Assembly: GCA_002269645.1 (NCBI GenBank)
Contig: NIVC01000152.1
Location: 682,001 to 746,000, forward strand
DNA length: 64,000 nucleotides
Direction of reading: 5' to 3'
Source: Macrostomum lignano
Taxonomy: Eukaryota
Both the position numbers and the translations under genes were made by a program. Below, in pieces: positions 4,564 through 63,600 of this stretch. The notes under the pieces were generated by a model. That model was not told where the DNA came from, did not search any database, and saw only the letters and a list, made by a program, of their open reading frames with translations. Numbering within the stretch: position 1 is the first letter of the stretch; each line of letters begins with the position of its first letter.

Positions 4564-7500
4564 ATGTTCAACCACCACCATCAGGAGCGTCATGGATTTC
4601 AGCAGCCGCAGCCGTCGTCTCAGCCGCAGTATCAACCATGTCAACAAAACCCTCTGCCAGACTATTGCCGCAAGCTGACTGTCAGGGGTGAGTGCGATTG
4701 CAATTATGTATAGAGTCACACTGTGGGGGATCAGGGTGTAGCAGCGGGTCACACTGTGGGGATCAGGGTGTAGCAGTGGGTCACACTGTGAGGGATCAGG
4801 GTGTAGCAGCGGGTCACACTGTGAATGATCAGGGTGTAGCAGCGGGTCATACTGTAAGGGTTCAGGGTGTAGCAGCGGGTCACACTGTGGGGGTTCAGGG
4901 TGTAGCAGCGGGTCACACTGTGAGGGTTCAGGGTGTAGCAGCGGGTCACACTGTGAGGGTTCAGGGTGTAGCAGCGGGTCATACTGTAAGGGTTCAGGGT
5001 GTAGCAGCGGGTCACACTGTGAGGGTTCAGGGTGTAGCAGCGGATCACACTGTGAGGGATCAGGGTGTAAATCACAGGAGTTCAGGCGGTGTAAATCTAT
5101 TTATTCAGTTATTTACCAGCAAAAGGTAAAAGTGGGCTGACAGCTAAAACAAGGTAGCTAACATTTCATCATTTTCCATCTATCGGTCTTTTGCTTGAAA
5201 AATCATAATCCCCGTCGTAAAATCGTTTGTCCGCCCCCATAGGCGCTCCGAGCATCTGAAGTGCCTATTCAGCATTTTCAATCTGCATAATGGCTTTATC
5301 AGTTGTTTCGGCACTTGCTGCTTTTAAAAGCAATAGCTATTTAAAAAAGAGCCGCATTAACAATGTATTGACAATGCTGGCTGAAGCAAACAGGCAGTTT
5401 TCAATTAACAGGTCCACTCCGCTCCATTTGAAACGGGTCCCCCATCGTCTTTTGTTTAAATTGGCAGAGCAGCTCCAGCGCGGCAAAAAACTAATTAAGC
5501 AAAACGGCTGTCAGTGAAGTGTGTTTATCGCTGACAAACTCATCAATTATCAAATAAAAACAGTTACCAAAGTCGCTATATCCGATGGAAAATCAATTAA
5601 TTAATCGCGATATGCCGAACTGGGCTTTTGAGCGCCAGAATCGCAATTATTCGGCATCCTGGTTCCAAACTCGGGATGCCAAATTGAAAACCAGGATTCC
5701 AGCTGGCATCGGTGGAAAAATTCAAAATCAAATGAAATACCAACATCTGTACTGAAGCTTCTGCTTAGGAGGGGATTAGAAAGTTAAAGAGATGCACGCT
5801 CAATACGCGCGACTGTCACACGGCTGCTGTCAGGGTCAGAGAGTCAGAACTATTTAAAAAATTGTCGCAAAAAAGCATCGAATCTACATGTATCTTGAGG
5901 GAGAACTGCTGTGAGCTTTTTATTGTATCTTGCAAATATGAGCTTTTGGTTAAGAGCTTTTGGTTAGGAATTCTCGTTGCCAGTTTCCTTGGATGGATCG
6001 AGACAAAGGTAATTATCAAAATTGCCTTGCTCCCCCCTGCTGTGCCCCCGGAGTCCTTTTCATTTTTACTACTCAATTTCCCGCACGTCAGCAGTGGTTT
6101 CTGCTGGATTTGAATCTGTTCCAAATGCTTACATACCTACCATTTTCCATCCATTTGATTCCAGACTAAATTCTTGAAAGTTTACTAGCTACCAGTATGT
6201 CACAAGCCTATGATCCAAGACACAAGCCTTTGATCCAAAACACAAGCCTTTGATCCAAGACACATGCCTTTGATCCAAGACACAAGCCTTTGATCCAAGA
6301 CACATGCCTTTGATCCAAGACACATGCCTTTGATCCAAGACACAAGCCTTTGATCCAAGACACATGCCTTTGATCCAAGACACATGCCTTTGATCCAAGA
6401 CACAAGCCTTTGATGCAAGACACATGCCTTTGATCCAAGACACATGCCTTTGATCCAAGACACATGCCTTTGATCCAAGACACAAGCCTCTGATCCAAGA
6501 CACAAGCCTTTGATCCAAGACACATGCCTCTGATCCAAGACACATGCCTCTGATCCAAGACACAAGCCTTTGATCCAAGACACAAGCCTCTGATCCAAGA
6601 CACATGCCTCTGATCCAAGACACAAGCCTTTGATCCAAGACACATGCCTCTGATCCAAGACACAAGCCTTTGATCCAAGACACAAGCCTTTGATCCAAGA
6701 CACATGCCTCTGATCCAAGACACAAGCCTTTGATCCAAGACACAAGCCTATGATCCAAGACACAAGCCTTTGATCCAAGACAAGCCTCTGATCCAAGACA
6801 CGTCTTTGATCCAAGTCACATATCTTTGATCCAAGAAACGTGCCTTCTATGTTAGATACAAATTCTTTGATCTAATACTGCACAGCTACTTCAGTCCAAG
6901 ACTAAATAATGTCTTTAATACAAAACTCCAGACTCTTTATGTCAAGATATGAACTCTTACATAGGACACACAAGTTCTACGAGTCCCAAGACCCTTCAAA
7001 CTTAGCGATCGCATCCCCATTTCCCTTCCAGACTCGAACGGCGTACTGAAGGAAATGATCTTCCCCAAAGCGCTGGATCTCGACAGGCCAAAACGAGCTC
7101 GGACGACATTTTCCAGCGATCAGCTGGTCCGACTGGAGGAGGCGTTCAGGCACAATCACTACATGGTGGGCAGGGAGAGAAACGAGCTGGCTAAAGCCCT
7201 GGGCCTGTCTGAAACCCAGGTGCGAAACTAATTAAACGGAAAAGTAGTCAATTTCAATTATTTTAATAAATTTCCCGCTTGCACCGCTGACGTCATAGTT
7301 CGTTGCAAATGTCTCACGACCTATTTCACTGCTGCAACAGGTGAAAGTCTGGTTCCAAAACCGACGCACGAAGTTCAAACGCGACCAGGGCGGCGCCGGT
7401 GTGACGGACGATGCCGGCGCGGGCGGACAGTCGGACAGCAGTCCGCCCGGACGGCCGAGGACGCCTCCCGAGCTGCTGAAGCTCAGCAAGCCGCAGCAGG

Positions 7501-7787
7501 GTGAAGCCGCCGCAGCGGCGGCAGCTGCTGCAGCCTACATGTACAGCATGCCCTGGTACAGGCAGTCGCCAACAAGCAGCACAGGGCCGTCGTTTCTCAT
7601 GCCGGGAATCGCTCAGCAGTCGCAGGTGCCGCCGGAGACATCGCCGCAACCATCTTCGCAGTCGTCAAGTCGGCAGCAGCACCCAGTAGAGTCCAATGTG
7701 GGTCATTTTTCGTTCGTTCAGTCGACTTACAGCTTGCCAGCTCCGTACAGTCAGATGCAGGGCTTGTTCAAGCCTAGGGGCGTGTGA
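4564..7787 (+). CDS. Vax: Vax (ventral anterior homeobox) transcription factor, 3 exons, 252 aa
   Basis: Exons 4564-4687, 7032-7219, 7341-7787, all GT-AG with consistent phases. Spliced product has the Vax-diagnostic [31 protein letters not shown] before homeodomain [59 protein letters not shown]. In-frame TAG at 4555 precedes the ATG. Confidence 0.93.
4717..5070. repeat. 33-bp minisatellite in Vax intron 1
   Basis: Unit cagggtgtagcagcgggtcacactgtgagggtt, about 10 copies. Confidence 0.95.
6198..6835. repeat. 20-bp minisatellite in Vax intron 1
   Basis: Unit tgatccaagacacaagcctt, about 31 copies. Confidence 0.97.
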
Positions 7788-12627: not shown

Positions 12628-13438
<811 letters not shown>

Positions 13439-13816
13439 TGATAAGCACATTTCGGGAAAAGTATTTGTTTTTGAAAATATGCTGTAAAAGTCAGACAATC
13501 CTAAATTATTTTTTTAATTATTAATGTCTTTTCTTTTTTCCTGCCTTGCTTGTAAATGCAAATAAACGCATTACGAGCCACGATCACATTGCTGTCTGGA
13601 GAAATATTTCGAACAAAAACTTTTCCTTTTCAAAGCGGGAAAACGATTTTTTAAACTTGTCCCAGTTCTTACTTTATGGCTGCAATTCGAAACAGGTTTC
13701 CTGCTCTCTGACAGTCATATTTAATCTCGCAGTCATGCGGCTAATTGACAATATAATACCTTCAGAACTCTTTTACGAGCGTAACTGCAAATCGAGCAGG
13801 CCTGCCCCTCTAGAGA

Positions 13817-14487
13817 TTGAGATGGGACTGGAGCTAGGGATGAGATAGGACTGGGACTGGTGATGAGATGGGACTGGTGTTGAGATGGGACTGGTGTTGA
13901 GATGGGACTGGTGTTGAGATGGGACTGGTGTTGAGATGGGACTGGTGTTGAGATGGGACTGGTGTTGAGATGGGACTGGTGTTCGGATGGGACTGGTGTT
14001 GAGATGGGACTGGTGTTGAGATGGGACTGGTGTTCGGATGGGACTGGTGTTGAGATGGGACTGGTGTTGAGATGGGACTGGTGTTGAGATGGGACTGGTG
14101 TTGAGATGGGACTGGTGTTGAGATGGGACTGGTGTTGAGATGGGACTGGTGTTCGGATGGGACTGGTGTTGAGATGGGACTGGTGTTCGGATGGGACTGG
14201 TGTTGAGATGGGACTGGTGTTGAGATGGGACTGGTGTTCGGATGGGACTGGTGTTGAGATGGGACTGGTGTTGAGATGGGACTGGTGTTCGGATGGGACT
14301 GGTGTTCGGATGGGACTGGTGTTGAGATGGGACTGGTGTTGAGATGGGACTGGTGTTGAGATGGGACTGGTGTTGAGATGGGACTGGTGTTGAGATGGGA
14401 CTGGTGTTGAGATGGGACTGGTGTTGAGATGCGACTGGTGTTGAGATGGGACTGGTGCTGAGATGGGACTGGTGTTGAGATGGGACC
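13817..14487. repeat. 17-bp minisatellite (GGGACTGGTGTTGAGAT)n, copy 1
   Basis: Directly visible. Confidence 0.97.
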
Positions 14488-14797
14488 GTGCGAAGGCTTG
14501 GAATTTGAAATCACTTGTGAACTTGTGAAAAGAATAGGGCGCTCTCTTCTGCCATCCTCCGCAGCTAGGCACAAGTGCGCAAGCACTAACACTGCCAGTT
14601 TACAAAGCTTATACAGTTGATACAGCAAATCTAATGAGATGAGGTGAGCGACCGATACCTGAGCTGCCGTCCGTATAATAATTTCTCACAGCACTATGCT
14701 GGGCTAGAAGTGAAACGGCACAACAGATTTCAATTTTGACACTCAATGCATCGCCACAATTTTTTTCTATCACAGTTAAACTTTAGAACCTATGCAG

Positions 14798-15680
14798 ATG
14801 AGTTACATTAGGTGTGCACCAGAACATAGACAGGCAAATGAGTCACATTAGGCGTACACCAGAACCTACTCAAGCAGATGAGTCACCTTAGGTGTACACC
14901 AGAACCTACTCAAGCAGATGAGTCACATTAGGTGTACACCAGAACCTACTCAGACAGATGAGTCACATTAGGTGTACACCAGAACCTACTCAAGCAGATG
15001 AGTCACATTAGGTGTACACCAGAACCTACTCAGACAGATGAGTCACATTAGGTGTACACCAGAACCTACTCAAGCAGATGAGTCACATTAGGTGTACACC
15101 AGATCCTAGACAGACAGATGAGTCACATTAGATGTACACCAGAACCTACTCAAGCAGATGAGTCACATTAGATGTACACCAGAACCTAGACAAGCAGATG
15201 AGTCACAATAGGTGTACACCAGAACCTACTCAGACAGATGAGTCACATTAGGTGTACACCAGAACCTAGACAGGCAGATGAGTCACATTAGATGTACACC
15301 AGATCCTACTCAGACAGATGAGTCACATTAGGTGTACACCAGAACCTAGACAGGCAGATGAGTCACATTAAGTGTACACCAGAACCTAGACAGGCAGATG
15401 AGTCACATTAGTTGTACACCAGAACCTACTCAGACAGATGAGTCACATTAGGTGTACACCAGATCCTAGACAGACAGATGAGTCACATTAGATGTACACC
15501 AGAACCTACTCAAGCAGATGAGTCACATTAGATGTACACCAGAACCTAGACAAGCAGATGAGTCACATTAGGTGTACACCAGAACCTAGACAAGCAGATG
15601 AGTCACATTAGGTGTACACCAGAACCTAGACAGGCAGATGAGTCACATTAGGTGTACACCAGATCCTACTCAGACAGATA
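14798..15680. repeat. 40-bp minisatellite, copy 1 (units contain TGAGTCA)
   Basis: Unit gatgagtcacattaggtgtacaccagaacctactcaagca with variants, about 22 copies. Confidence 0.97.
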
Positions 15681-15881
15681 AGTTCAAACAGTAAAAAGTG
15701 GACAAAAAGCAATAATTGCAGAATGCGAACGCGCAGTATGAAGCGATTCCAGCTTGTATTTCTTTCATCTCAAAGTTTCTCAGCCAAGTAAGTTTTTCGC
15801 CATTCCTTAATTTTCCATTTTTAACCGTTATTGAAAACATTCTTTCTACGCTGCCGTGCCGCTGACTCTGCTGTCCGCCGG

Positions 15882-16927
<1,046 letters not shown>

Positions 16928-17305
16928 TGATAAGCACATTTCGGGAAAAGTATTTGTTTTTGAAAATATGCTGTAAAAGTCAGACAATCCTAAATTATTT
17001 TTTTAATTATTAATGTCTTTTCTTTTTTCCTGCCTTGCTTGTAAATGCAAATAAACGCATTACGAGCCACGATCACATTGCTGTCTGGAGAAATATTTCG
17101 AACAAAAACTTTTCCTTTTCAAAGCGGGAAAACGATTTTTTAAACTTGTCCCAGTTCTTACTTTATGGCTGCAATTCGAAACAGGTTTCCTGCTCTCTGA
17201 CAGTCATATTTAATCTCGCAGTCATGCGGCTAATTGACAATATAATACCTTCAGAACTCTTTTACGAGCGTAACTGCAAATCGAGCAGGCCTGCCCCTCT
17301 AGAGA

Positions 17306-18010
17306 TTGAGATGGGACTGGAGCTAGGGATGAGATAGGACTGGGACTGGTGATGAGATGGGACTGGTGTTGAGATGGGACTGGTGTTGAGATGGGACTGG
17401 TGTTGAGATGGGACTGGTGTTGAGATGGGACTGGTGTTGAGATGGGACTGGTGTTGAGATGGGACTGGTGTTGAGATGGGACTGGTGTTGAGATGGGACT
17501 GGTGTTCGGATGGGACTGGTGTTGAGATGGGACTGGTGTTGAGATGGGACTGGTGTTCGGATGGGACTGGTGTTGAGATGGGACTGGTGTTGAGATGGGA
17601 CTGGTGTTGAGATGGGACTGGTGTTGAGATGGGACTGGTGTTGAGATGGGACTGGTGTTGAGATGGGACTGGTGTTCGGATGGGACTGGTGTTGAGATGG
17701 GACTGGTGTTCGGATGGGACTGGTGTTGAGATGGGACTGGTGTTGAGATGGGACTGGTGTTCGGATGGGACTGGTGTTGAGATGGGACTGGTGTTGAGAT
17801 GGGACTGGTGTTCGGATGGGACTGGTGTTCGGATGGGACTGGTGTTGAGATGGGACTGGTGTTGAGATGGGACTGGTGTTGAGATGGGACTGGTGTTGAG
17901 ATGGGACTGGTGTTGAGATGGGACTGGTGTTGAGATGGGACTGGTGTTGAGATGCGACTGGTGTTGAGATGGGACTGGTGCTGAGATGGGACTGGTGTTG
18001 AGATGGGACC
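17306..18010. repeat. 17-bp minisatellite, copy 2
   Basis: 34 bp longer than copy 1. Confidence 0.97.
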
Positions 18011-18317
18011 GTGCGAAGGCTTGGAATTTGAAATCACTTGTGAACTTGTGAAAAGAATAGGGCGCTCTCTTCTGCCATCCTCCGCAGCTAGGCACAAGTG
18101 CGCAAGCACTAACACTGCCAGTTTACAAAGCTTATACAGTTGATACAGCAAATCTAATGAGATGAGGTGAGCGACCGATACCTGAGCTGCCGTCCGTATA
18201 ATAATTTCTCACAGCACTATGCTGGGCTAGAAGTGAAACGGCACAACAGATTTCAATTTTGACACTCAATGCATCGCCACAATTTTTTTCTATCACAGTT
18301 AAACTTTAGAACCTATG

Positions 18318-19522
18318 CAGATGAGTTACATTAGGTGTGCACCAGAACATAGACAGGCAAATGAGTCACATTAGGCGTACACCAGAACCTACTCAAGCAG
18401 ATGAGTCACCTTAGGTGTACACCAGAACCTACTCAAGCAGATGAGTCACATTAGGTGTACACCAGAACCTACTCAGACAGATGAGTCACATTAGGTGTAC
18501 ACCAGAACCTACTCAAGCAGATGAGTCACATTAGGTGTACACCAGAACCTACTCAGACAGATGAGTCACATTAGGTGTACACCAGAACCTACTCAAGCAG
18601 ATGAGTCACATTAGGTGTACACCAGATCCTAGACAGACAGATGAGTCACATTAGATGTACACCAGAACCTACTCAAGCAGATGAGTCACATTAGATGTAC
18701 ACCAGAACCTAGACAAGCAGATGAGTCACAATAGGTGTACACCAGAACCTACTCAGACAGATGAGTCACATTAGGTGTACACCAGAACCTAGACAGGCAG
18801 ATGAGTCACATTAGATGTACACCAGATCCTACTCAGACAGATGAGTCACATTAGGTGTACACCAGAACCTAGACAGGCAGATGAGTCACATTAAGTGTAC
18901 ACCAGAACCTAGACAGGCAGATGAGTCACATTAGTTGTACACCAGAACCTACTCAGACAGATGAGTCACATTAGGTGTACACCAGATCCTAGACAGACAG
19001 ATGAGTCACATTAGATGTACACCAGATCCTACTCAGACAGATGAGTCACATTAGGTGTACACCAGATCCTAGACAGACAGATGAGTCACATTAGGTGTAC
19101 ACCAGAACCTACTCAAGCAGATGAGTCACATTAGATGTACACCAGAACCTAGACAAGCAGATGAGTCACATTAGGTGTACACCAGAACCTAGACAAGCAG
19201 ATGAGTCACATTAGGTGTACACCAGAACCTAGACAGGCAGATGAGTCACATTAGATGTACACCAGATCCTACTCAGACAGATGAGTCACATTAGATGTAC
19301 ACCAGAACCTAGACAGGCAGATGAGTCACATTAGGTGTACACCAGAACCTAGACAGGCAGATGAGTCACATTAGGTGTACACCAGAACCTAGACAGGCAG
19401 ATGAGTCACATTAGGTGTACACCAGAACCTACTCAGACAGATGAGTCACATTAGGTGTACACCAGAACCTAGACAGGCAGATGAGTCACATTAGGTGTAC
19501 ACCAGATCCTACTCAGACAGAT
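18318..19522. repeat. 40-bp minisatellite, copy 2
   Basis: 320 bp longer than copy 1, about 30 units. Confidence 0.97.
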
Positions 19523-19724
19523 AAGTTCAAACAGTAAAAAGTGGACAAAAAGCAATAATTGCAGAATGCGAACGCGCAGTATGAAGCGATTCCAGCTTGT
19601 ATTTCTTTCATCTCAAAGTTTCTCAGCCAAGTAAGTTTTTCGCCATTCCTTAATTTTCCATTTTTAACCGTTATTGAAAACATTCTTTCTACGCTGCCGT
19701 GCCGCTGACTCTGCTGTCCGCCGG

Positions 19725-20823
19725 TCAGATGAACTGCAGCGGGTCGTAGCGTCGCTGCCGGCTTGTCTGTCGGAGAAATCCGCGTTGGTCACCGCCGCCG
19801 TCGCCGTTTCGCCGACGTCGGATGGCCAGCAGCGGGTCGTAGCGCTTGCGGAGGTCGCTGCGGCGCGACGGCTCCGAGCGAACCCAGTCGTCGTCAGCCC
19901 TGGCCGGCGGCTCCCTTCGGGTGTCGTCTCCGCAGTCGTCGACGGAGTCAAGATCGTCGCAGTCGGAATCGGCAAATTCGTTGGAATCGTCGTCAATGAG
20001 CTGCTGGTCCTCTTCGAAGTAGCTCGATGGTCGGAGACTGCGCGACTGCGACTGCGGAATCGGGCGGGAGTCTTGTCACTCCGCTAATTAGCTGGGGGAG
20101 TCTTGTCACTCCGCTAATTAGCTGGGGGAGTCTTGTCACTCCGCTAATTAGCTGGGGGAGTCTTGTCACTCCGCTAATTAGCTGGGGGAGTCTTGTCACT
20201 CCGCTAATTAGCTGGGGGAGTCTTGTCGCTCCGCTAATTAGCTGGGGGAGTCTTGTCACTCCGCTAATTAGCTGGGGGAGTCTTGTCACTCCGCTAATTA
20301 GCTGGGGGAGTCTTGTCGCTCCGCTAATTAGCTGGGGGAGTCTTGTCACTCCGCTAATTAGCTGGGGGGAGTCTTGTCACTCCGCTAATTAGCTGGGGGA
20401 GTCTTGTCACTCCGATAATTAGCTGGGGGAGTCTTGTCACTCTACCAATTAGCCAATCTTGTCACTCTGCCAAAAAATCGTGTCACAGTCTTGCCCATTT
20501 ACTAATTTCATAATGGAGTCTTGTCACTCCGCTAATTTGGTGGGAAGGGAGAGTCTTTTCACACCGTGAATTTTGTCTCGTCACTCTGCTACTTGATTTT
20601 ATTCTGATACCCCGAATTTATCTGCAACTTTCGCAAGCACAGATTCCATTGAGGCCAGAATTTTCACTTCCTTAGCAACTATCTGGGATAGCTACGCATA
20701 ATCTGCCCACATCCCAGCCTCCACACTCCGCAATGCAAGGCTCACCACTTGTAGCTGAGCCGCAGCGATCAGCAGCACCAGCAACAGGGCCGCTCCTGCG
20801 CCTCGAATTCCTAGAAAATTCAT
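19725..20823 (-). CDS. Neuropeptide/prohormone precursor, 2 exons, 134 aa, with YDPLLAI and YDPLQFI peptides
   Basis: Exon 1 20823-20746 encodes signal peptide MNFLGIRGAGAALLLVLLIAAAQLQV with a GTGAG donor (phase 0). Exon 2 20051-19725 follows ttccgcag in frame: [108 protein letters not shown]. Signal peptide, acidic spacer and repeated motif at dibasic sites form a typical prohormone layout. Confidence 0.85.
20067..20450. repeat. 30-bp minisatellite in the neuropeptide gene intron
   Basis: Unit gagtcttgtcactccgctaattagctgggg, containing the palindrome gctaattagc. Confidence 0.96.
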
Positions 20824-21139
20824 AATCCTCACTGGGGTAGAATGATAAACAGACAGTGCTGCACTGGGTTTTTTTAAAATTAGCCTAACAAAAATTTGGT
20901 CGAGAGCGAAATAACTTTATAAAGAGTGTCTCGCTCGCGAAAAAAGCAAAGAGAGAGAAAGAAGTGCCGGCTCGGGCCTAGAGCTGCAGGTAAATCTCGC
21001 TAGTCACCGGGCGGGGGGGGGACCTCTCAGGGGACGCAACCGGGGCCAATCTGTGCCAGCCGAGGAGCGAAGGCAGGATGGAGCCAGCTCGGCGACTGGG
21101 GAGCATTTCTACATGACAAAGTGGATTCAGGAGAGCTTG

Positions 21140-25100: not shown

Positions 25101-28100
25101 TCAGGAGCGGCTCAGCGCTTCGATCATTTTGGATATTCGCTCATCGTTGCGCACGATGTTGGCCTTGACGGTGGCGATGAGGTCGAGCTTGTCGCGCTCG
25201 GCTTGCTCCAGCTCAGCCAGCTGGTGCCGCAGGCCATTCAGCGAGGCGTCTGCCGTGCTGCGGGACCGGGGGAGATCGTGGCTTCAGGGTCTGGTGGGTG
25301 CGTGGCTTCAGGGTCTGGTGGGTGCGTGGCTTCAGGGGCTGGTTGGTGCGTGGCTTCAGGGGCTGGTGGGTGCGTGGCTTCAGGGGCTGGTGGGTGCGTG
25401 GCTTCAGTGGCTGGCGGGTGCGTGGCTTCAGGAGCTGGTGGGTGCGTGGCTTCAGGGGCTGAGGATTTGGTTATCATGAAATATGGAATTCCCGAATATA
25501 GGATCGGGGAATATTTAGGATCAGGGAATATCTGGGATGAGGGGATATTTAGAATCAAGGAATATTTGAGATCAGGGAATATTTAGAATCAGGGAATATT
25601 TAGGATCAGGGAACATCTGGCTTGAGGGAATATTTAGGATCAAGGAATATTTGGGATCAGGGAATATTTAGAATCGGGGAATATATAGGATCAGGGAATA
25701 TCTGGCTTGAGGGAATATTTAGGATCAGTGAATATTTGGGATCAGGGAATATTTAGAATCAGGGAATATTTAGGATCAGGGAATATCTGGGATGAGGGGA
25801 TATTTAGGATCAAGGAATATTTGGGATCAGGGAATATTTAGGATCAGGGAATATTTGGGATCAGGAATATTTAGGATCAGGGAACATCTGGCTTTAGGGA
25901 ATATTTAGGATCAGGGAATATTTGGGATCAGGGAATATTTAGGATCAGGGAATATTTGGGATCAGGGAATATTTAGGATCAGGGAATATTTAGAATCAGG
26001 GAATATTTGGGATCAGGGAATATTTAGGATCAGGGAATATTTAGAATCAGGGAATATTTGGGATCAGGGAATATTTAGAATCAGGGAATAATTAGGATCA
26101 GGGAATATCTGGCTTGAGGGAATATTTGGGATCAAGGAATATTTAGGATTAGAGAGCATTTGGGATCAGAGAGTATTTGGGATCAAAGAATATTTGGGAT
26201 CAGGGAATATTTAGGATCAGGGAATATTTGGGATCAGGGAATATTTAGAATCAGGGAATATTTAGGATCAGGGAATATCTGGCTTGAGGGAATATTTGGG
26301 ATCAAGGAATATTTAGGATTAGAGAGCATTTGGGATCAGAGAGTATTTGGGATCAGAGAATATTTGGGATCAGGGATCATAATATTATTAGAGATATTAT
26401 GGGATTTCGTACCTCTGCTCCTGCTTCAGCCGGGCCATGACCTCTTTTGTCTCGGCGCGCCACCGCTCCAGCTCCTTTGACATGGAGTCCAGGTCTTCCT
26501 GCACGTAGTCGATGACTTTGCCGAGCGGGTTGGCCTCCCGGGTCAGCGCCTGCAGCTGCTGCTTCAGCCTGTCAATCTCCCTAGCCGTGGCCGCCTTCTC
26601 CCGCTTCCTGTTGGCGTCTGTGGTGGTCAGCACCGTCTTGCCGCCGGCGTCCTTGGCGCCGCCGCTGGCGTCCTTGAACTCCTGCTTGGACTTCAGCATC
26701 TCCTTCACCAGCCCGCCGTGCTGCTCGTCGCGACCTTCTTCGTCGTCGTCGAGGCCGCCGCCGCCGTCGTCGCCTAGGCCGCCGGCTAGCAGGGTTGGCG
26801 GCGCCTCCTCCACCACGAACTGGTCGTCGTCGGAGTCCTGGTCGCGCTCGATGATCACCCCGCTGACGCGCTTGCCGCTGCCGTCGTCGACCACCGCGGC
26901 GCCGGCCTTGGTCTTCGGCAGCGGCGCCGGCTTGCGCTGGAGGTTCGGCCACCGCTACTGCGTGGGGGAGGGGCGGGGAATTTCCCAGTGTTTTAGCCTT
27001 CTTCTGGGGTAGTTTGGAGGGTATTTTTTCGGGTAGGAGGGTATTATTTTTTGGGGTATTTCTGAGGGTATTTTTGGGGGTGTTTCGAAAGGTATTTGTT
27101 CGTAGGTGTTTTTAAGGGTATTACCTCTGAGATATTTCGAAGGGTATTCCTTCTGGGGTATTCCGGAGGGTATTTGTTCTTGGGTATTTTGGAGGGTATT
27201 CTTTCTGGGGTAGGTTGGAGGGTATTTTTTTGGGTAGGAGGGTATTATTTTTGGGGTATTTCTGAGGGTATTTTTGGGGGTGTTTCGAAAGGTATTTGTT
27301 CGTAGGTGTTTTGAAGGGTATTACCTCTGAGATATTTCGAAGGGTATTTTTTCTGGGGTATTCCGGAGGGTATTTGTTCTTGGATATTTCGGAGGGTATT
27401 CTTTCTGGGGTATTTTGGAGGGTATTCCTTCTGGGGTATTCCGGAGGGTATGTGTTCTTGGGTATTTCGGGGGTACTCTTTCTGGGGTATTTGGGAGAGT
27501 ACATGCACTTCGATTGGCATTTCTATGGGTACATCTGTGTGTATTTCTGTGGGTATTTCAGAAGATACTATTGGGGTAATTGTAGGTGCTACTCTCGAGC
27601 TTCTCAAGGTGTATAAGTTGATATTTGTGTGCTTATTTTTCCGAGAAATAATTATTAGGAATCTTAGGCTTACTCTGAGACATTTCTGAGGCTACTTCTG
27701 GGATATTCTAGAGTAGGTTATTCGCTGTTTTTTTTAATAATTCCTCACGCCTCGACCCCTGGTTTGATTCCATGAGCGGCCATATTTGGGGCTTGAGTAC
27801 AAAAAATGGCGTTGTCGTGTGCGATTCACAGCCATCAGGGCCAAACCCTCGTGTGTACATTGAAGAGTGTACATTCCCGACGATTAGAAAGTCAGGGCTG
27901 CTGTACACCCTGTGTGAGCGCTGGTTGTGGGACATGTCGCCCGCAGCCCTAAAATTTCAAATATTTGAGGCTCCTTGCCTCGACTGTTCCCCACTCACCC
28001 GCTGGGCTCCTCTGCGTCACCTCTTTGCCTGCGCTGCTGCTCTTCTTCTGAAAGGGTAACGTGGAAGTTTTGAGAATAGAAATCCGAATAATATTTTATT

Positions 28101-43900: not shown

Positions 43901-45029
43901 GGATCGGGATTCGGGATTGGGATTCGGGATTCGGGATCGGGATTCGGGATCAGGATTCAAAAATGAGGTTTACCGGGTTACTGGGCGGTAGCAACAAGCG
44001 CCCTAGCAAGCTCGCACAAATGCTAGACGCTTAACAAAGTCTCTGAAGAAGCAGCTGACTCACTCACCAAATGAGACTGCACAGCTAAGCGTGGCTTCGT
44101 CATCACTATTCCTCCAACCCCCCTCCCCGCAGACTACCCGGTGGTGTTCCTGTGCTACCGATCAGCGGGGCCCCAGCTAGTCCAATCCTGCTACAGCAGC
44201 AGGGCGCCAGTCTGGTCTGGCCACCTGTGCAGGTAAGCCGAGCCCGAGTGAGTGCTCTGGAATTTCTGGAAGCTCCGGAAGCGCAGCCGGAAATCTTACT
44301 GGGTCCTCAAAACTACACGAACCAAGCAAAAATATTTCAACTATGCAAGCCCAATTATATTTTTGCATCCGCGTCTGGGAGTCAATTTTCAGAGGCTTTC
44401 CCGCAATTAGCTTTAGTCAGGAGTGACAGGTGTGAGTCACTAGCTAAAGTAGCCACAGAGCCCTGATAGTCGACAAATGATTCGGAATGAAAATCTTTAA
44501 AATTGGGCCTTCAAAGCACAAAGGTCACGGTTGTTGTCCGGGGTGGTCAGCTCGTCCATCCGTTGTTTATGTCGCGCCTTATTAAGGACAGAAGGTGACG
44601 TGATGCTCCGAGGTCTCCTCTCCCATGCCACAGAAGGACGGGTGGAAAAGCAACAGGTTTGCAACGAGTTAAGTCTGAGGAAGGCCGGTTAGGACCATGC
44701 ACATCTCCCTGAGAACGAGTCTGCCACTAGTAGACTCTTGACTAGTTAGTAGTAGACCCCAACCCTAACCCAACCCTAACCCAACCCTAACCCAACCCTA
44801 CCCTAACCCTAACCCAACCCTACCCTAACCCTAACCCAACCCTACCCTAACCCTAACCCTTCGCAGTCCCTATCACCGCCTTCTCGACTGCGTCGAAGCC
44901 TCCGCCAACCGACTGTGCGGCTCCGCGGCCGCCCGCCTGGCCGGGCCGCTGACGCAGCTGTCCGAACCGGCGCTGTCCGAGCGATGCGGCCCACTACCTC
45001 GGACACGACAAGCAAGTCAAGCTCCATAG
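40959..45029 (+). CDS. Secreted cysteine-rich protein, 5 exons, 209 aa, two tandem 6-Cys domains
   Basis: Exons 40959-41016 (signal MRTLNAALHILCTVYCLSDG), 42550-42709, 43316-43464, 44133-44232, 44867-45029. All GT-AG, phases 1,2,1,2, giving one open 630-nt frame. Twelve mature Cys with repeated spacing C-x10/11-C...C-x8-C-x7/8-C...C. Resemblance to DUF19/CPG4-like helical disulfide domains is tentative. Confidence 0.8.
41068..41500. repeat. 21-bp minisatellite in intron 1 of the Cys-rich gene
   Basis: Unit tagtgactgtcacaatctcta. Confidence 0.95.
42225..42532 (+). repeat. (ATCCCG/AAATCCCG)n microsatellite immediately 5' of exon 2
   Basis: Directly visible; reverse-complementary in motif to 43517-43955. 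Confidence 0.93.
42742..43262. repeat. Degenerate A/C-rich minisatellite filling intron 2 of the Cys-rich gene
   Basis: Recurring aacacaacacccaccccaa and cagcctccccaataaacagc units. Confidence 0.9.
43517..43955 (-). repeat. (GGGATC/GGGATTC)n microsatellite just 3' of exon 3
   Basis: Directly visible. Confidence 0.93.
44757..44860. repeat. Interstitial telomere-like (CCCTAA/CCCAA/CCCTA)n tract
   Basis: Ends 6 nt before the exon-5 acceptor of the Cys-rich gene. Confidence 0.9.
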
Positions 45030-47432: not shown

Positions 47433-47762
47433 ACAATTTATCCCAAAGGCGGGCGGGCGCGATCTCAGCTTCCTTCTCTCTCCCCGGTCCCCTTTCTCCT
47501 CTCCCCTCTCAACTAGCTATCTGTTGCTAGGGGGGTTGCAAAGAGAAAGCAACAACAAACAAGAAAACACAGGCAAAACATTCCAGTAGCAACCAAAACT
47601 CTGCGATGCGGGTGGGGAATCTGTTTCCCAGGGCGAGTCGCTGAGATGCTGTTAATGCATTTTCTAATTAAATAAATTTTTTATCCACCCATACTCGATT
47701 TTCCACAGAAAATTTTTACACAAATTATTGCTACATAAAATTTAAAAAGCTTTTGTCACAAT

Positions 47763-48805
47763 CAGTGCCACGATGCGTGTCACAGTACCGACAGCATGCC
47801 AAGCTGCGTAGCTAGTGAGTGTCACACTCAGTGCCACGATGCGTGTCACAGTACCGACAGCATGCCAAGCTGCGTAGCTAGTGAGTGTCACACTCAGTGC
47901 CACGATGCGTGTCACAGTACCGACAGCATGCCAAGCTGCGTAGCTAGTGAGTGTCACACTCAGTGCCACGATGCGTGTCACAGTACCGACAGCATGCCAA
48001 GCTGCGTAGCTAGTGAGTGTCACACTCAGTGCCACGATGCGTGTCACAGTACCGACAGCATGCCAAGCTGCGTAGCTAGTGAGTGTCACACTCAGTGCCA
48101 CGATGTGTGTCACAGTACCGACAGCATGCCAAGCTGCGTAGCTAGTGAGTGTCACACTCAGTGCCACGATGCGTGTCACAGTACCGACAGCATGCCAAGC
48201 TGTGTAGCTAGTGAGTGTCACACTCAGTGCCACGATGTGTGTCACAGTACCGACAGCATGCCAAGCTGCGTAGCTAGTGAGTGTCACACTCAGTGCCACG
48301 ATGCGTGTCACAGTACCGACAGCATGCCAAGCTGCGTAGCTAGTGAGTGTCACACTCAGTGCCACGATGCGTGTCACAGTACCGACAGCATGCCAAGCTG
48401 TGTAGCTAGTGAGTGTCACACTCAGTGCCACGATGTGTGTCACAGTACCGACAGCATGCCAAGCTGTGTAGCTAGTGAGTGTCACACTCAGTGCCACGAT
48501 GTGTGTCACAGTACCGACAGCATGCCAAGCTGCGTAGCTAGTGAGTGTCACACTCAGTGCCACGATGTGTGTCACAGTACCGACAGCATGCCAAGCTGTG
48601 TAGCTAGTGAGTGTCACACTCAGTGCCACGATGTGTGTCACAGTACCGACAGCATGCCAAGCTGTGTAGCTAGTGAGTGTCACACTCAGTGCCACGATGT
48701 GTGTCACAGTACCGACAGCATGCCAAGCTGTGTAGCTAGTGAGTGTCACACTCAGTGCCACGATGTGTGTCACAGTACCGACAGCATGCCAAGCTGTGTA
48801 GCTAG
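47763..48805. repeat. 66-bp minisatellite
   Basis: About 16 near-identical units; ORFs 47742-48773 and 47796-48839 are by-products. Confidence 0.97.
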
Positions 48806-49736
48806 TTATATGATAATAGTTATATTATTTATATTATAATTAGTTGACCTTGAATGCTAGTGCTGGCAGACAAACTGCTCATTGCTACGATAAAAAACAC
48901 TTCGACAAAAATTTTTTGGACACGGCGCAGGCACAACTGAGAGCTTAAAGGGTAAAGCATCTGAAATGGCGAATGCCTACAGAACAAAACCAACTCAATC
49001 TCTTGCCACTGCTCTGTCTTGACCCAAGCATGCCTAGCTAGGTACTCAAATCTATGCCTTCAGCTTATTCTCAATTAAATGAGGCAGAAGCACTGTGGGC
49101 GCACCTGGCAACCGAAGCAGCCGCCGCCCACCATTCCACAGTCCTCCCTCGACCTGTCAGTGCGCTATCTGGCCACCGGAAAAATAAGATGTCTAAAGAG
49201 CCCACGACAATGCGATATGATCTTGGGGTTTGAGTCAGAGAGGGGAGGGTGAGTTTGAGTCAAGACTGAATGCGAGCGAGCAAGCTAAAGAACTCGGTTA
49301 TTGCGTCTTACGATGCCTTCTCCTAGTTGGTTGACAGATTAAATACAAAACCTACCCCCACTGCTCAAGGCTTCGGCCCAGAAATAGAAGCATTAAGGGG
49401 TCTGAGCAGTGCGTTGTGTAGTTGCCTGGGCCAACCGATAACAATAAAAAGCAATGCATTTCTTGCTCGCTCTGCTTTGCAAATCTTTTTTTGAGCGACT
49501 CAACTGCGCCAGTGCCGACCCCGAGTTTGCTGCGCACACCCTCTGCTCACTGCAGAATTCCAAGCCCTCACCGGGTGCGCCCCACACAGTCCTGCAATAG
49601 GCGAAGGCGGCTCTCTCTCTCTTTCTCTCCATCGTCTCCGCCAACGCCACCCCAAGTTTTATTATCGGTTTCTCCCGCGCCTCAAAAGCGACACTCACGC
49701 CGCCCACAGGCGTTCACAGAGCCGCCCCAACGGGTC

Positions 49737-58265
<8,529 letters not shown>

Positions 58266-59526: not shown

Positions 59527-60609
59527 TCACATATTCGTCTCGCTGACGCTAGAAGCCACTGTTGGCACATTTTTGCGGCTATGCAAGCCGCCATCGTTTC
59601 CGCCGCGGAAGCAACAGGGCAGTAGAAGACGCAGGAACTGCTGCTTGAACGCGGTGTTGTACAGCAGGTAGATTGGCAAATTAATAAACACTTGCCAACT
59701 ATAGAACAGGCTCAGGCCGTAGTTGATGCACAGGTAGAGGAAGTAGTCGTTGGTTCTCACGAAAGCCTGCTTCAGATTTACGGCCTCCAGGCAGGCGATG
59801 GGCAGAGAGAAGACGCTGTGCATGATGCTGGTTGCCAGGAGCATCTGAGTCAGCTGGCGCTCGGCGTCGTCAGTTGATGAAGTGGCCTGTCGGGACCGGC
59901 GCACAGAGCTAGGGACCTGGGAGAGTCGCCTGCGGCGCTTCCGCATATCCCAGATGCAGTAGCAGAGCACAATGTTTATCACGGCGTTGGCCACGACAGG
60001 GACGTGGATGGTGAGCGCCAGTTCAGCGCCTCGCAGAGCGAGAGACAGATCTGTCAATAGCAGGTAGCAGTAGGGCATGTACCATTTGCCCTGATAGTAC
60101 ACGTCTCGAAACTGCACTGTGTAAAAAAATCTGGGCAAGTTTACTGCCAGCACGGTGACGCAAAGTGCGCCAGTGCAGGCAACCGCAAATTGCGTTCGAC
60201 GCCCCTTGGCGTGCGTGCGCAGCGGCGACGCCACCACGCGGAGCCGGTCGGCGGCTAGCAGGACCATGAGCCAGTTGCCGAAGCCCCTGCCCACATTGTA
60301 GGCAGTAAAAAGGGCTCGGCAGAGCCACAGTTCCATGACTCCCTGTGGCAGCCGGCTGTAGTGGTAGATAGCTAGCCTGCACAGGCAGTAGACCAGATCG
60401 GCCAGAGTCAGCGCCAGCACGTACACGTGGCAAGAATGGCTGATGCGAGCTGCCAGGAGTGTAGCCAGGATTAACACGTTCGCAATGACGCCGATGCAGC
60501 AGATGATGGTCTGGTACCATGCGTGGTAGTTTTCCCACGCCTGCTGGATTTCATGGCAAGGACAGCCGATGCATTCACTGCTGTTGCTAACGCTTGTGCC
60601 GTTATTCAT
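59527..60609 (-). CDS. Intronless rhodopsin-class (class A) peptide-type GPCR, ~360 aa
   Basis: N-terminal sequons (NGT, NSS), seven hydrophobic segments, TM1 IGVIAN, TM2 LALTLADL, TM3 ADRL (DRY variant), TM4 NLPRFF, ERQLTQMLL before TM6, TM7 INLPIY, C-terminal LLPCC. These fit the invertebrate FMRFamide/myosuppressin-receptor-related (Srw-like) group. First ATG at 60609; the ORF track starts at a TTG at 60621. Confidence 0.88.
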   Translation of the reverse strand: MNNGTSVSNSSECIGCPCHEIQQAWENYHAWYQTIICCIGVIANVLILATLLAARISHSCHVYVLALTLADLVYCLCRLAIYHYSRLPQGVMELWLCRALFTAYNVGRGFGNWLMVLLAADRLRVVASPLRTHAKGRRTQFAVACTGALCVTVLAVNLPRFFYTVQFRDVYYQGKWYMPYCYLLLTDLSLALRGAELALTIHVPVVANAVINIVLCYCIWDMRKRRRRLSQVPSSVRRSRQATSSTDDAERQLTQMLLATSIMHSVFSLPIACLEAVNLKQAFVRTNDYFLYLCINYGLSLFYSWQVFINLPIYLLYNTAFKQQFLRLLLPCCFRGGNDGGLHSRKNVPTVASSVSETNM

Positions 60610-63600
60610 CGCGTAAGTCAAGGATTTTTGACTTTGAAGTCTTCAATTGCTATGAAGGCTGGCTCCGAACAGCAGCCGTATTTTATCTGGCTACAAGCAC
60701 TGCTTTGCGCCTCTGTTTTCGTCTCTTGCTCTCAAAGCTCTTAGAGCAGTTTGATTTACTTGCTTATCTGTCCACTTCCCGAGTGAGGCCGTCTCCATAG
60801 GGAGAAGACCAGATGCCACTGTTCCGAACTTGTCAGATACTCAGAGCTTCAAATTGTCGGCTTTCTTGACAACCAGCTGACAGGAGCTGCTAATAATGTA
60901 AAGCAGGCGATTTGGAAACTCGTCTGATTTACATTAGTTTGAGGTAAGAGACCTTGCTGATATCTCTTCTGGAACAGTCATACTGCATGGCATAAAATGA
61001 CAAAATGTGAGTCCCTGAATCAAATTAGGATTTCGAGCAAAAATAATGCATAATTCAGAATTTTTGTCAGCAGTGGAATAGCTCGGTTTTAAAATGCCCC
61101 ATTTTGGGTCCACATTTAACTGCACTTCTGGTTTGCACTGAAGCTTGTTATTGTTGGGTAATTTTCAGTTTTATTGCTTGCATACGTGTAGCCCTACTAT
61201 GTGTTTGAACTATAGCTCCGACTCCCATGCTTGATGATATAGCATGATGATATCCCTCATAGCTCTCACTGAAAGCCCAAAAATTCTTAGAACTTGTCCG
61301 TGCTGACCTTATTATCAAGTGGGTGGTAGCGCACGTACAACGTCATGACTATAGTTAATGAGGCCTCACGGTATTTGTTGTGTTTGCAGTCTCAGCGCAC
61401 TGCAGAGTATTCGGGGTGTGGTGAGAGTTTTACTTTCGCTGCACAGCGGCGTAGGCAATTTGACTGCATGGCTAATATATACTTTGTCGTCGATAGCCGG
61501 TGACGGCCGCGTGCCGAAGCCCTTGAAGGCTTTGTGAATTGACACTGTCAAAATATATTAAGGCCGCTTATAAGGCCACTGCGGCCCGATTACGGATCCT
61601 GCGAACTATAGGCATTGCAAGCGAATCATATAGCCGTGCAGCAGAGTATATGCGCCAGCTAAAACGATTGCTAGCTGGCTGGCATCGGACCAAGCTGCGT
61701 ATGCGTCTGTTTAAGCGTCTGCTGTTGCATGGCTTGTACTTAGTTATTCAGCACGGCTGCGTCATCGATTGTGAGGATCAATCACAGACGGACGGACAGT
61801 AATGAAGGATGGAAGTACACGCTACGATCGACGCCTTAAACGCCTGATACGCATAGGCGACTGGCGCGTAGCCATGCAGAGCGGCCAGATAGCCGCAGCA
61901 CAAGCAGCAGTGTGGCGTTAACCATCACCGTGTTCGACAGCAGCATCCATACACAGCCGATGCCCGCGTCCCACTACTATAGACGATGCATATGAATTTT
62001 GGCTTTTAACCAACAATTCTTCCATTGACTCGAAAAAGGTGTTAAACAAGGACAACTAATTAAAGAAACGTAGTAACCGTAGTTTAGCTAGTATAGTCCT
62101 TGGTGTTGGGCGCAATAAGCAGATCCGAGTACTTGGCAGCGATAACTGTACGTTTAACTTGTTGACATTGATGAACAGCAAGCAGAGAGATGTAGAAGCG
62201 GCGCTTCTAAAAATAAAATGCCACTGTAAAATTTCTGTTTGTTGTCGACCACACTTATATTGAACCTTTATATATATTTTCGGTGCCCCCTTATAAACCA
62301 TAGGCCTTTCTTTACGACTTCATCTGTATTATCTGCTTTTTCGAAATATTAAGTTGTCAAAGTGACTTGCCCTACGTCTCGGGGGCATTATGGACGACAC
62401 TTAATATATTTCACCTCTTTACGTAATGAAAAGGACATAATTTTATGTCAAGTTTAGTGTTAGTAAAATATACAATAGCTTTCATTTTCTAGTGAGCACA
62501 ATGCATACGAAAAAATAGTAACATTTTGTTATAGCCATTTTTTCTAAAAAATCGTTTTTTAATTGTAACTTATTCGGTATTTTATAACACGATTATTACA
62601 TTTTCCTGTAGAAGGTCGATGATTGATTGGCTTGACCCTAGCTTTCGTCATACGTCACCAGTATTGTAAAATTGTTACTGAGATTTATTATCTTTAGAGA
62701 GTAAGGAGCCGATACGATAGTCGGTTTCTTTTTAAACTCAATAAGGAGTCAATATAGAATTTAGTTTCATTCTTGAATTGCAATTGCATCAATAATACAC
62801 GTACGTAAATACAACTGCAAGAATGACGTCGATTTATTTCAGTGTAGTTATTCTTCTCTTAGCAGGTATGCAATGTTGTGATCTATTTTAAATGAGTAGA
62901 GTTCAAATTATGATTTTATTTGTGCATAGATTTTTTATAGCATAGACTATATAGCCATATATGTTAGACCTATAATTTTAATACCTCTGACCCTCCCTAC
63001 CCTAATGATGTATTGGAATAGGCTTAGTCAAAGCTGTATATTAGTATTGTCAAAAAAGCAAAAAAAGCATTATAATATAATTATAATATAGTTTAACTAG
63101 AAAATTTAACCATGTGTAGCAATCAGATATTTGTGATATTAATTATTTAACTAATTATTGCTAAACTTAATCACTATAAAAATAAAATGTTGATTGACAG
63201 TCATAAATCTACTTTGTTACTGAAGTGGCTGTTACCAAATTGGCTGGTACTGAAGTGGATTGTATTTGATATTTTCCCAACAGATATTTTTCCCTTCAAA
63301 TAGATAATTCAAACAAAAATTAATTGATGTTTCAGGATGCTCTTTACTCTGGTGCCACATTTAGCTAGTGTTGGGCAAGTTACTCAAAAAAAGTAACTTG
63401 CATTACTGTAACTTAAGTTACCAATTTTTAAAAAGTAACTTACGTTAGCCTAGTAACTTTAGACAAAAACCTGGTAACTTTTAAGTTACTGTCCGTTACT
63501 CACTTCCGTTATTGGCCATGTTATTAACAAAATTTTCTGCTTTTTTCACTTTACACATTTTTTCTCATTGTTGTTACCGAAATTTGCCATTGGTCATTGG

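Follow-up and report, generated by a model that had tools for sequence, protein, structure and literature searches.

A functionally unannotated gene of Macrostomum lignano looks like a peptide-hormone precursor whose nearest analogue is the FDPI family of flatworms

Flatworms possess precursors of short peptides that share the core F-D-P-I. In planarians, mass spectrometry has confirmed FDPIQFamide (eight copies) and FDPIMFamide from Smed-spp-15 and (p)QFDPIMY from Smed-spp-16, the latter precursor being classed by Collins et al. among "miscellaneous non-amidated peptides" (Collins et al. 2010, PMC2953531). In schistosomes, Sm-npp-26 is predicted to yield NFDPILF, SYFDPILF, SYFDPIIY, and EHFDPIIY, and similar peptides are predicted from Sj-npp-26; in spp-16 and in both npp-26 precursors the peptides are non-amidated and the last one ends at the stop codon (PMC2953531). 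Peptides of Sm-npp-26 have been detected with free C-termini by liquid chromatography-tandem mass spectrometry (PMC9495596). Sm-npp-26 is expressed in neurons, SmGPCR20 (Smp_084270, identified by yeast two-hybrid) and SmGPCR9 (identified by bioluminescence resonance energy transfer with NFDPILF at 1 uM) are candidate receptors, and RNA interference against this system affects egg production, gonads, and motility (PMC10783048, PMC13367911). Here we describe gene Mlig001801 of the flatworm Macrostomum lignano, which lies in a 64,000-nucleotide stretch of contig NIVC01000152.1 (assembly GCA_002269645.1, Mlig_3_7), called the window below; a 21-kb locus of this contig matches the reverse complement of the window exactly. 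Mlig001801 is probably the precursor of a peptide hormone or neuropeptide that works in the manner of spp-15, spp-16, and Sm-npp-26.

The locus is gene Mlig001801 of M. lignano, which encodes a putative secreted prepropeptide of 134 aa on the minus strand (Table 1). Its two coding exons join in phase to give 405 nt, specifying 134 aa and a stop, with the donor G/GTGAGC at the end of exon 1 (slashes mark junctions) and the acceptor CCGATTCCGCAG/T (CCGCAG) in front of exon 2. From end to end, the spliced product shows 100% identity to two GenBank proteins, PAA67536.1 (BOX15_Mlig001801g2) and PAA89378.1 (BOX15_Mlig001801g1), and a third copy, g3 (PAA74970.1), differs from it by L14P, S62P, and G111S. 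The GenBank annotation of Mlig_3_7 derives from a genome-guided transcriptome (StringTie/TACO, de novo transcripts, and RNA-seq; PMC5730564), and because the junction is exact in a GenBank protein derived from RNA-seq and transcripts, a spliced mRNA is implied. The same exon junction is found in two models from the older ML2 assembly, UniProt A0A1I8IWE6 and A0A1I8FTW2, both of which are frame-shifted farther downstream. An earlier note, made from the letters of the window, had described a two-exon gene with an in-frame splice that was hidden and absent from the list of open reading frames (ORFs). All the elements of that structure are where it placed them, and the mechanically made list indeed holds no ORF ending at 19725, but the gene was hidden only from this bacterial-style list, since the GenBank annotation is based on RNA-seq. 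Its model is already public under the label "hypothetical protein", with no functional name, and it is the function that is unannotated. Among the papers open to searching, there was no mention of the identifier Mlig001801 or of the peptide YDPLQF and no single-cell atlas of M. lignano with neuropeptides, and neither Macrostomum nor FDPI figures in a 2026 review of neuropeptides from marine flatworms.

The product has the anatomy of a prohormone, as the earlier note had held: a signal peptide, an acidic spacer, and a repeated peptide set between dibasic and tetrabasic sites are all present, the signal peptide being judged heuristically from Kyte-Doolittle hydrophobicity and the -3/-1 rule. Hydrophobicity reaches its window maximum of 2.97 at residues 10 to 20, and the -3/-1 rule offers candidate cleavage positions after residues 20 to 22, of which that following Ala22 is the most plausible. 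The claim of a 26-aa signal-peptide exon thus stands as far as the 26 codons and their signal anatomy go, but the favored cleavage falls inside exon 1 and not at its end. Between residues 23 and 93 there are 22 Asp or Glu residues as against 8 Lys or Arg, and five basic runs punctuate the protein (RR at 71-72, RR at 89-90, RKR at 94-96, RRRR at 104-107, and RR at 126-127), with a spacer of 18 aa between RRRR and RR-YDPLQFI. Because no Gly follows either predicted peptide, YDPLLAI and YDPLQFI would both have free, non-amidated C-termini; the [M+H]+ calculated for YDPLLAI is 804.450 and that for YDPLQFI 895.456. Both peptide sites contain the exact 16-nt core CGCTACGACCCGCTGC, and the peptide unit therefore appears to have been duplicated internally. 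The protein as a whole is rich in Asp (21 residues) and Arg (19 residues), which occur in low-complexity runs, and a Pfam scan of the 134-aa product returned no domain. An elevenin-like reading of the C-x9-C pair was considered and rejected, in that the loop is purely acidic, has no flanking cleavage sites, and bears no likeness to elevenin.

If Mlig001801 functions as this anatomy suggests, its signal peptide would be removed after about Ala22, a PC2-type convertase would cut at the basic sites, and a carboxypeptidase would trim away the basic residues to leave YDPLLAI and YDPLQFI with free, non-amidated C-termini. Either as neuropeptides or as peptide hormones, the two might then be ligands of a rhodopsin-type G-protein-coupled receptor (GPCR). 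The machinery for such processing exists in M. lignano, because a pc2 homologue, RNA815_2403.2, gives a signal in the nervous system by in situ hybridization, and its knock-down is lethal in hatchlings (PMC4490696). What is expected of prohormones in general, a transcript-derived protein carrying a signal peptide, is found here in a GenBank protein for which the signal peptide is predicted heuristically.

Compared with Sm/Sj-npp-26 (Smp_071050), Mlig001801 is likewise a small precursor (npp-26 and its relatives measure ~120-190 aa) with a signal peptide, a spacer, and peptides at KR or RR sites in the C-terminal half. In both, the peptides lack amidation, the last one ends at the stop codon, and the core runs aromatic-D-P-aliphatic-x-aromatic. 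The npp-26 peptides, however, have F-D-P-I and end in F or Y, whereas those of Mlig001801 have Y-D-P-L followed by Ile, one copy carrying Ala in place of the aromatic residue. The npp-26 precursors also hold five to seven copies as opposed to two, most of their peptides bear an N-terminal extension of one or two residues (SY, N, or EH) that Mlig001801 lacks, and there is no significant similarity at the level of the whole precursor. With spp-15 the likenesses are these: D, P, Q, and F are identical in FDPIQF and YDPLQF, the peptide begins directly after a dibasic site, and the last unit lies at the C-terminal end of the precursor. Unlike Mlig001801, spp-15 is amidated (Gly-Lys-Arg follows each unit) and consists of nine tandem units with no long spacers and no acidic, Cys-containing pro-region. 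In spp-16, as in Mlig001801, the peptides are non-amidated and few (three or four copies), spacer peptides separate them, and the last copy ends at the stop, but the core is FDPIMY with an N-terminal Gln or pyroglutamate, the peptide ends on Tyr, and the precursor has neither an acidic region nor a Cys pair.

Aligned in register with the cleavage site, YDPLQF and FDPIQF show four identities and two conservative changes. A position-specific scoring matrix (PSSM) built from 16 distinct core types of the FDPI family (17 precursors) gave YDPLQF 10.3 bits and peptide 1 5.2 bits, true members scoring 15-22 bits. The chance of a random 6-mer reaching 10.3 bits is 5.9e-5, and in a six-frame translation of the window a single unrelated 6-mer of 95,729 reached that score. 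With five post-basic positions, this comes by our own arithmetic to ~3e-4 for the Mlig001801 product, and to ~0.02 once 50-100 known flatworm peptide families are allowed for. Mlig001801 also has a signal peptide and repeated units at dibasic sites in the C-terminal part, as FDPI precursors do, and acidic spacers like its own are seen in several family members. Its last peptide runs into the stop without an amidation Gly (RR-YDPLQFI-TGA), a layout that recurs in precursors P0007, P0008, P0011-13, P0017-19, and P0024, with the Heterobilharzia precursor among those that share it. The earlier note had considered this ending unusual, a view that has to be reversed given that it is usual in spp-16, Sm/Sj-npp-26, and the Clonorchis and Opisthorchis precursors. 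The planarian FDPIQF and FDPIMF peptides that it named are real, namely FDPIQFamide (eight copies) and FDPIMFamide of spp-15, with QFDPIMY in spp-16 (PMC2953531).

A search with Sm-npp-26 and then with a family profile of seven sequences retrieved trematode, cestode, and planarian members, but no M. lignano protein. The profile recovered Trichobilharzia, Clonorchis, Opisthorchis, three Paragonimus species, the cestode Mesocestoides, and planarian spp-16, together with one JGI metagenome contig, one Logan contig, and one MetaClust sequence (P0024). The failure of this search to find a canonical FDPI precursor of M. lignano was counted in favor of a relation between Mlig001801 and the family. 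As an observation in its own right, the JGI metagenome contig (P0016; 904 bp, from an environmental sample) encodes a precursor of 186 aa in which an acidic spacer accompanies ten YFDPIMY/YFDPILY units, and by its sequence this is an uncharacterized member of the FDPI family.

A number of findings weigh against the reading of Mlig001801 as a prohormone, including its proposed relation to the FDPI family. The 17 precursors compared, which come from trematodes, a cestode, and planarians, contain ~90 units; all of these have F at position 1, at position 4 they have I or, in rare cases, T, and the C-terminal residue is aromatic in almost all of them. Mlig001801 keeps D2 and P3 of this invariant core but has Y1 and L4, and neither of its peptides ends on an aromatic residue, YDPLQF being extended by an Ile and YDPLLA-I having no aromatic residue there. 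It has two peptide copies, compared with 3-10 in most intact family members. When a 13-member family alignment was compared with the product using hhalign, FDPI was aligned with YDPL at a probability of 0.66% (E = 0.087); such a lack of detectable profile similarity is weakly informative, because it is expected for very short peptides. An exhaustive phmmer search of 1.84 billion representatives gave no homologue outside M. lignano and no member of the FDPI family, a result limited by the fact that other Macrostomum species seem to be unrepresented in the collections searched. A 4463-aa repetitive phmmer match (E = 4e-8) was discounted as likely compositional, its alignment not having been inspected, and a word-indexed homology search with the 134-aa product returned M. 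lignano entries only, among them several older-assembly models with frame shifts. The translation, processing, and neuronal expression of Mlig001801 are predictions, and its identifier is absent from the supplements of Grudniewska 2018 (one supplement set checked). The GC-rich sequence at this locus is open in several frames in the ORF list, so ORF length alone carries no weight. Finally, the coding sequences of the three M. lignano gene copies are 98.3% identical (398/405) and their unique non-coding flanks 98.2% (771/785; Fisher p = 1), and because both are equally ~98% identical the copies are uninformative on constraint. The paralogues differ by three amino-acid and two synonymous changes in 405 nt, and the BLAST identities of 94% between copies stem from minisatellite arrays.

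These findings bear differently on three other explanations. One is that Mlig001801 belongs to a peptide family specific to Macrostomum and unrelated to FDPI, the resemblance of the motifs reflecting convergence or chance. This is rather unlikely in our estimation, and what probability we give it is contained within that of the precursor reading, since it rivals the homology part of that reading and not the claim that the product is a prohormone. The M. lignano peptides do break all three rules of the known units (F1, I4, and an aromatic end), and neither hhalign, nor phmmer, nor the family profile connects the precursors. Yet the match keeps its register relative to the cleavage site and is improbable by chance for this protein, a free C-terminus and a last peptide at the stop are common to both, and the family-profile search turned up no other gene of the FDPI type in M. 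lignano. Because two defining features that were examined, the F-D-P-I core and the aromatic end, are absent, we do not file Mlig001801 as a member of the family. That it is a true divergent macrostomorph relative is possible, though on the sequence comparisons more doubtful than not, and the proposed functional analogy to FDPI-type precursors is the stronger claim. Where the earlier note had raised the possibility of a new member or branch of a flatworm peptide family, the layout of the precursor and the last peptide at the stop speak for it, and the core, the aromatic end, and the profile comparison do not.

The two remaining explanations dispute the prohormone itself. Mlig001801 might encode a small, secreted, acidic protein with no signaling role, for example of gland or seminal fluid, whose basic runs are not convertase sites and whose YDPL repeat is a by-product of duplication. 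The dominance of Asp and Arg in low-complexity runs is in line with this, as are the lack of a Pfam domain and of a homologue outside M. lignano and the reliance of prohormone expression and processing on sequence prediction. We regard it as unlikely all the same, since the duplicated unit is exactly a basic site plus a heptapeptide, the second copy ends the protein, and this layout is typical of prohormones and common to a validated flatworm family. More improbable still is a transcribed ORF of recent, lineage-specific origin, set among repeats, that has no conserved function and resembles a prohormone fortuitously. For such an ORF one can cite the minisatellite-packed surroundings, a sequence open in several frames, the absence of a homologue outside M. 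lignano, and differences between paralogues that look neutral, with divergence equal to that of the flanks. Against it, the splice links exon 2 in phase to a canonical signal peptide, and none of the three genomic copies of the gene, the introns of which measure 694, 664, and 1457 nt, has lost the reading frame, a splice site, or either peptide. Moreover, exon 2 is an island of 65% GC between flanks of 42-45% GC, and, read in the claimed frame, its GC content at the three codon positions (0.70/0.49/0.76) is coding-like, following the pattern of three Pfam-verified exons in the window (GPCR, 0.54/0.43/0.72; ankyrin, 0.62/0.36/0.78; and MIP-T3, 0.71/0.41/0.91). The shared 16-nt core, the GC island, and the coding-like composition argue for more than chance.

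Table 1. Features of the Mlig001801 locus and its partial duplicate (window coordinates)
Feature	Coordinates	Strand	Remarks
Putative non-coding 5' exon	21008..21128	-	Proposed from model A0A1I8FTW2; limits approximate
Putative 5'-untranslated-region intron	20832..21007	-	176 nt, GT..AG; proposed from A0A1I8FTW2
Exon 1	20746..20831	-	8 nt of 5' untranslated region, then ATG at 20823
Exon 1, coding part	20823..20746	-	26 codons, MNFLGIRGAGAALLLVLLIAAAQLQV; N-terminus identical to PAA67536.1
Predicted signal peptide, ~22 aa	20758..20823	-	n-region MNFLGIR, h-region GAGAALLLVLLIAAA, cleavage AAA/QLQ
Intron	20745..20052	-	694 nt, GT-AG
Exon 2, coding part	20051..19725	-	108 codons + TGA; no in-frame ATG/GTG/TTG
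Acidic pro-region, residues 27-93	19851..20051	-	Two Cys (C-x9-C)
Predicted peptide 1, YDPLLAI	19821..19841	-	RKR (19850-19842) before, RRRR (19820-19809) after
Predicted peptide 2, YDPLQFI	19728..19748	-	RR (19754-19749) before, TGA (19727-19725) directly after
AATAAC, weak poly(A)-signal-like hexamer	19670..19675	-	50 nt past the stop; from sequence
Exact duplicate of exon 2 (327/327 nt)	15882..16208	-	Same acceptor context and 3' flank

The scan of the window with the PSSM also brought to light the exact duplicate of exon 2, including both peptide sites. It has no exon 1 of its own, no annotated gene is called there, and it is missing from the sister loci L002 and L003, each of which has a single copy of the exon. 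The duplicate lies within a tandem duplication of ~3.5-3.8 kb (12712-16237 versus 16231-20080, 98.4% identity), in which there are three minisatellite arrays. This second exon 2 may serve as an alternative terminal exon, specifying an identical protein; it may also be a partial duplicate that stays silent, or an artefact of the assembly.

Upstream of the coding region, the older-assembly model A0A1I8FTW2, placed by tblastn, runs from ~21128..21008 straight into VRIMNFLG, which suggests a non-coding 5' exon and an intron of 176 nt in the 5' untranslated region (UTR). The putative 5' exon adjoins the donor G/GTGACT, with the acceptor CCCCAG/TGAGG at 20832/20831, and contains an upstream ORF of 33 codons whose TGA stop is created at the splice junction; in the joined leader, an in-frame stop lies nine codons upstream of the ATG. 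As an alternative to such an exon, a spliced leader may be trans-spliced at the 20831 acceptor. A TATA-like sequence, CTTTATAAAG, at 20924-20915 may be a promoter candidate, but this conflicts with the model that places the element inside the 5'-UTR intron: were it a real promoter, the 5' exon would be unused. At the other end of the coding intron, the 5' edge of exon 2 (20038-20059, minus strand) has three tandem CAG acceptors, CGCAG/TCGCAG/TCGCGCAG; use of the second would drop Ser-Gln in frame, and use of the third would shift the frame. Within this intron, Tandem Repeats Finder (TRF) reports a 30-bp minisatellite of 12.9 copies at 20066-20453, an array whose copy number varies between the gene copies.

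The window has ~47% GC, an observed/expected CpG ratio of 0.75, and an extreme density of minisatellites: its 64 kb yield 64 TRF rows, with arrays that repeat at periods of 4-76 bp and reach up to 1.2 kb (for example, 12650-13365, 16249-16854, 47754-48806, and 57303-58151). A degenerate interstitial telomere-like (CCCTAA/CCCAA)n tract of ~100 bp occupies 44756-44859. Upstream of Mlig001801, an exon at 26400-26954 on the minus strand matches the C-terminal domain of MIP-T3 (TRAF3IP1/IFT54; E = 8e-26) and probably belongs to a gene for a 374-aa protein. On the plus strand, an exon at 7299-7784 encodes the third helix of a homeodomain, and several ankyrin-repeat exons followed by an ion-transport domain at 51570-55992 mark a TRPA-like cation channel gene. 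A stop-free, apparently intronless ORF of 371 codons at 59530-60642 on the minus strand, ~39 kb from Mlig001801, encodes a rhodopsin-family GPCR (PF00001, E = 1e-12); among solved structures, it is nearest to those of chemokine, bradykinin, and somatostatin receptors.

Because the gene model is public and the peptide family has already been described, the gain here is a functional annotation and a hypothesis, and not a new kind of system. What is new is the recognition that a functionally unannotated gene looks like a peptide-hormone precursor in its anatomy, with the FDPI family as its nearest analogue. Should the peptides prove real, a candidate neuropeptide would be added for M. lignano. 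The closest relatives in schistosomes, those of SmNPP26, are tied to egg production, gonad development, and motility, and their candidate receptors are under consideration as drug targets; in free-living M. lignano, with transgenesis available, the biology of ligand and receptor would be easier to study. A tentative further step, to which we give less than even weight, is orthology between the FDPI peptides of spp-15, spp-16, and npp-26 and, in macrostomorphs, YDPLLAI and YDPLQFI. If that were true, flatworm-specific, reproduction-linked FDPI signaling would date to the base of the Rhabditophora, and the ligand would have proved able to exchange F-D-P-I-x-F/Y for a Y-D-P-L-x-x-I form with an extended C-terminus, its receptor presumably having co-evolved, in the one flatworm with routine transgenesis. 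Provided that the peptides are real, Mlig001801 would also offer a test of how far short, non-amidated ligands can drift while signaling is retained.

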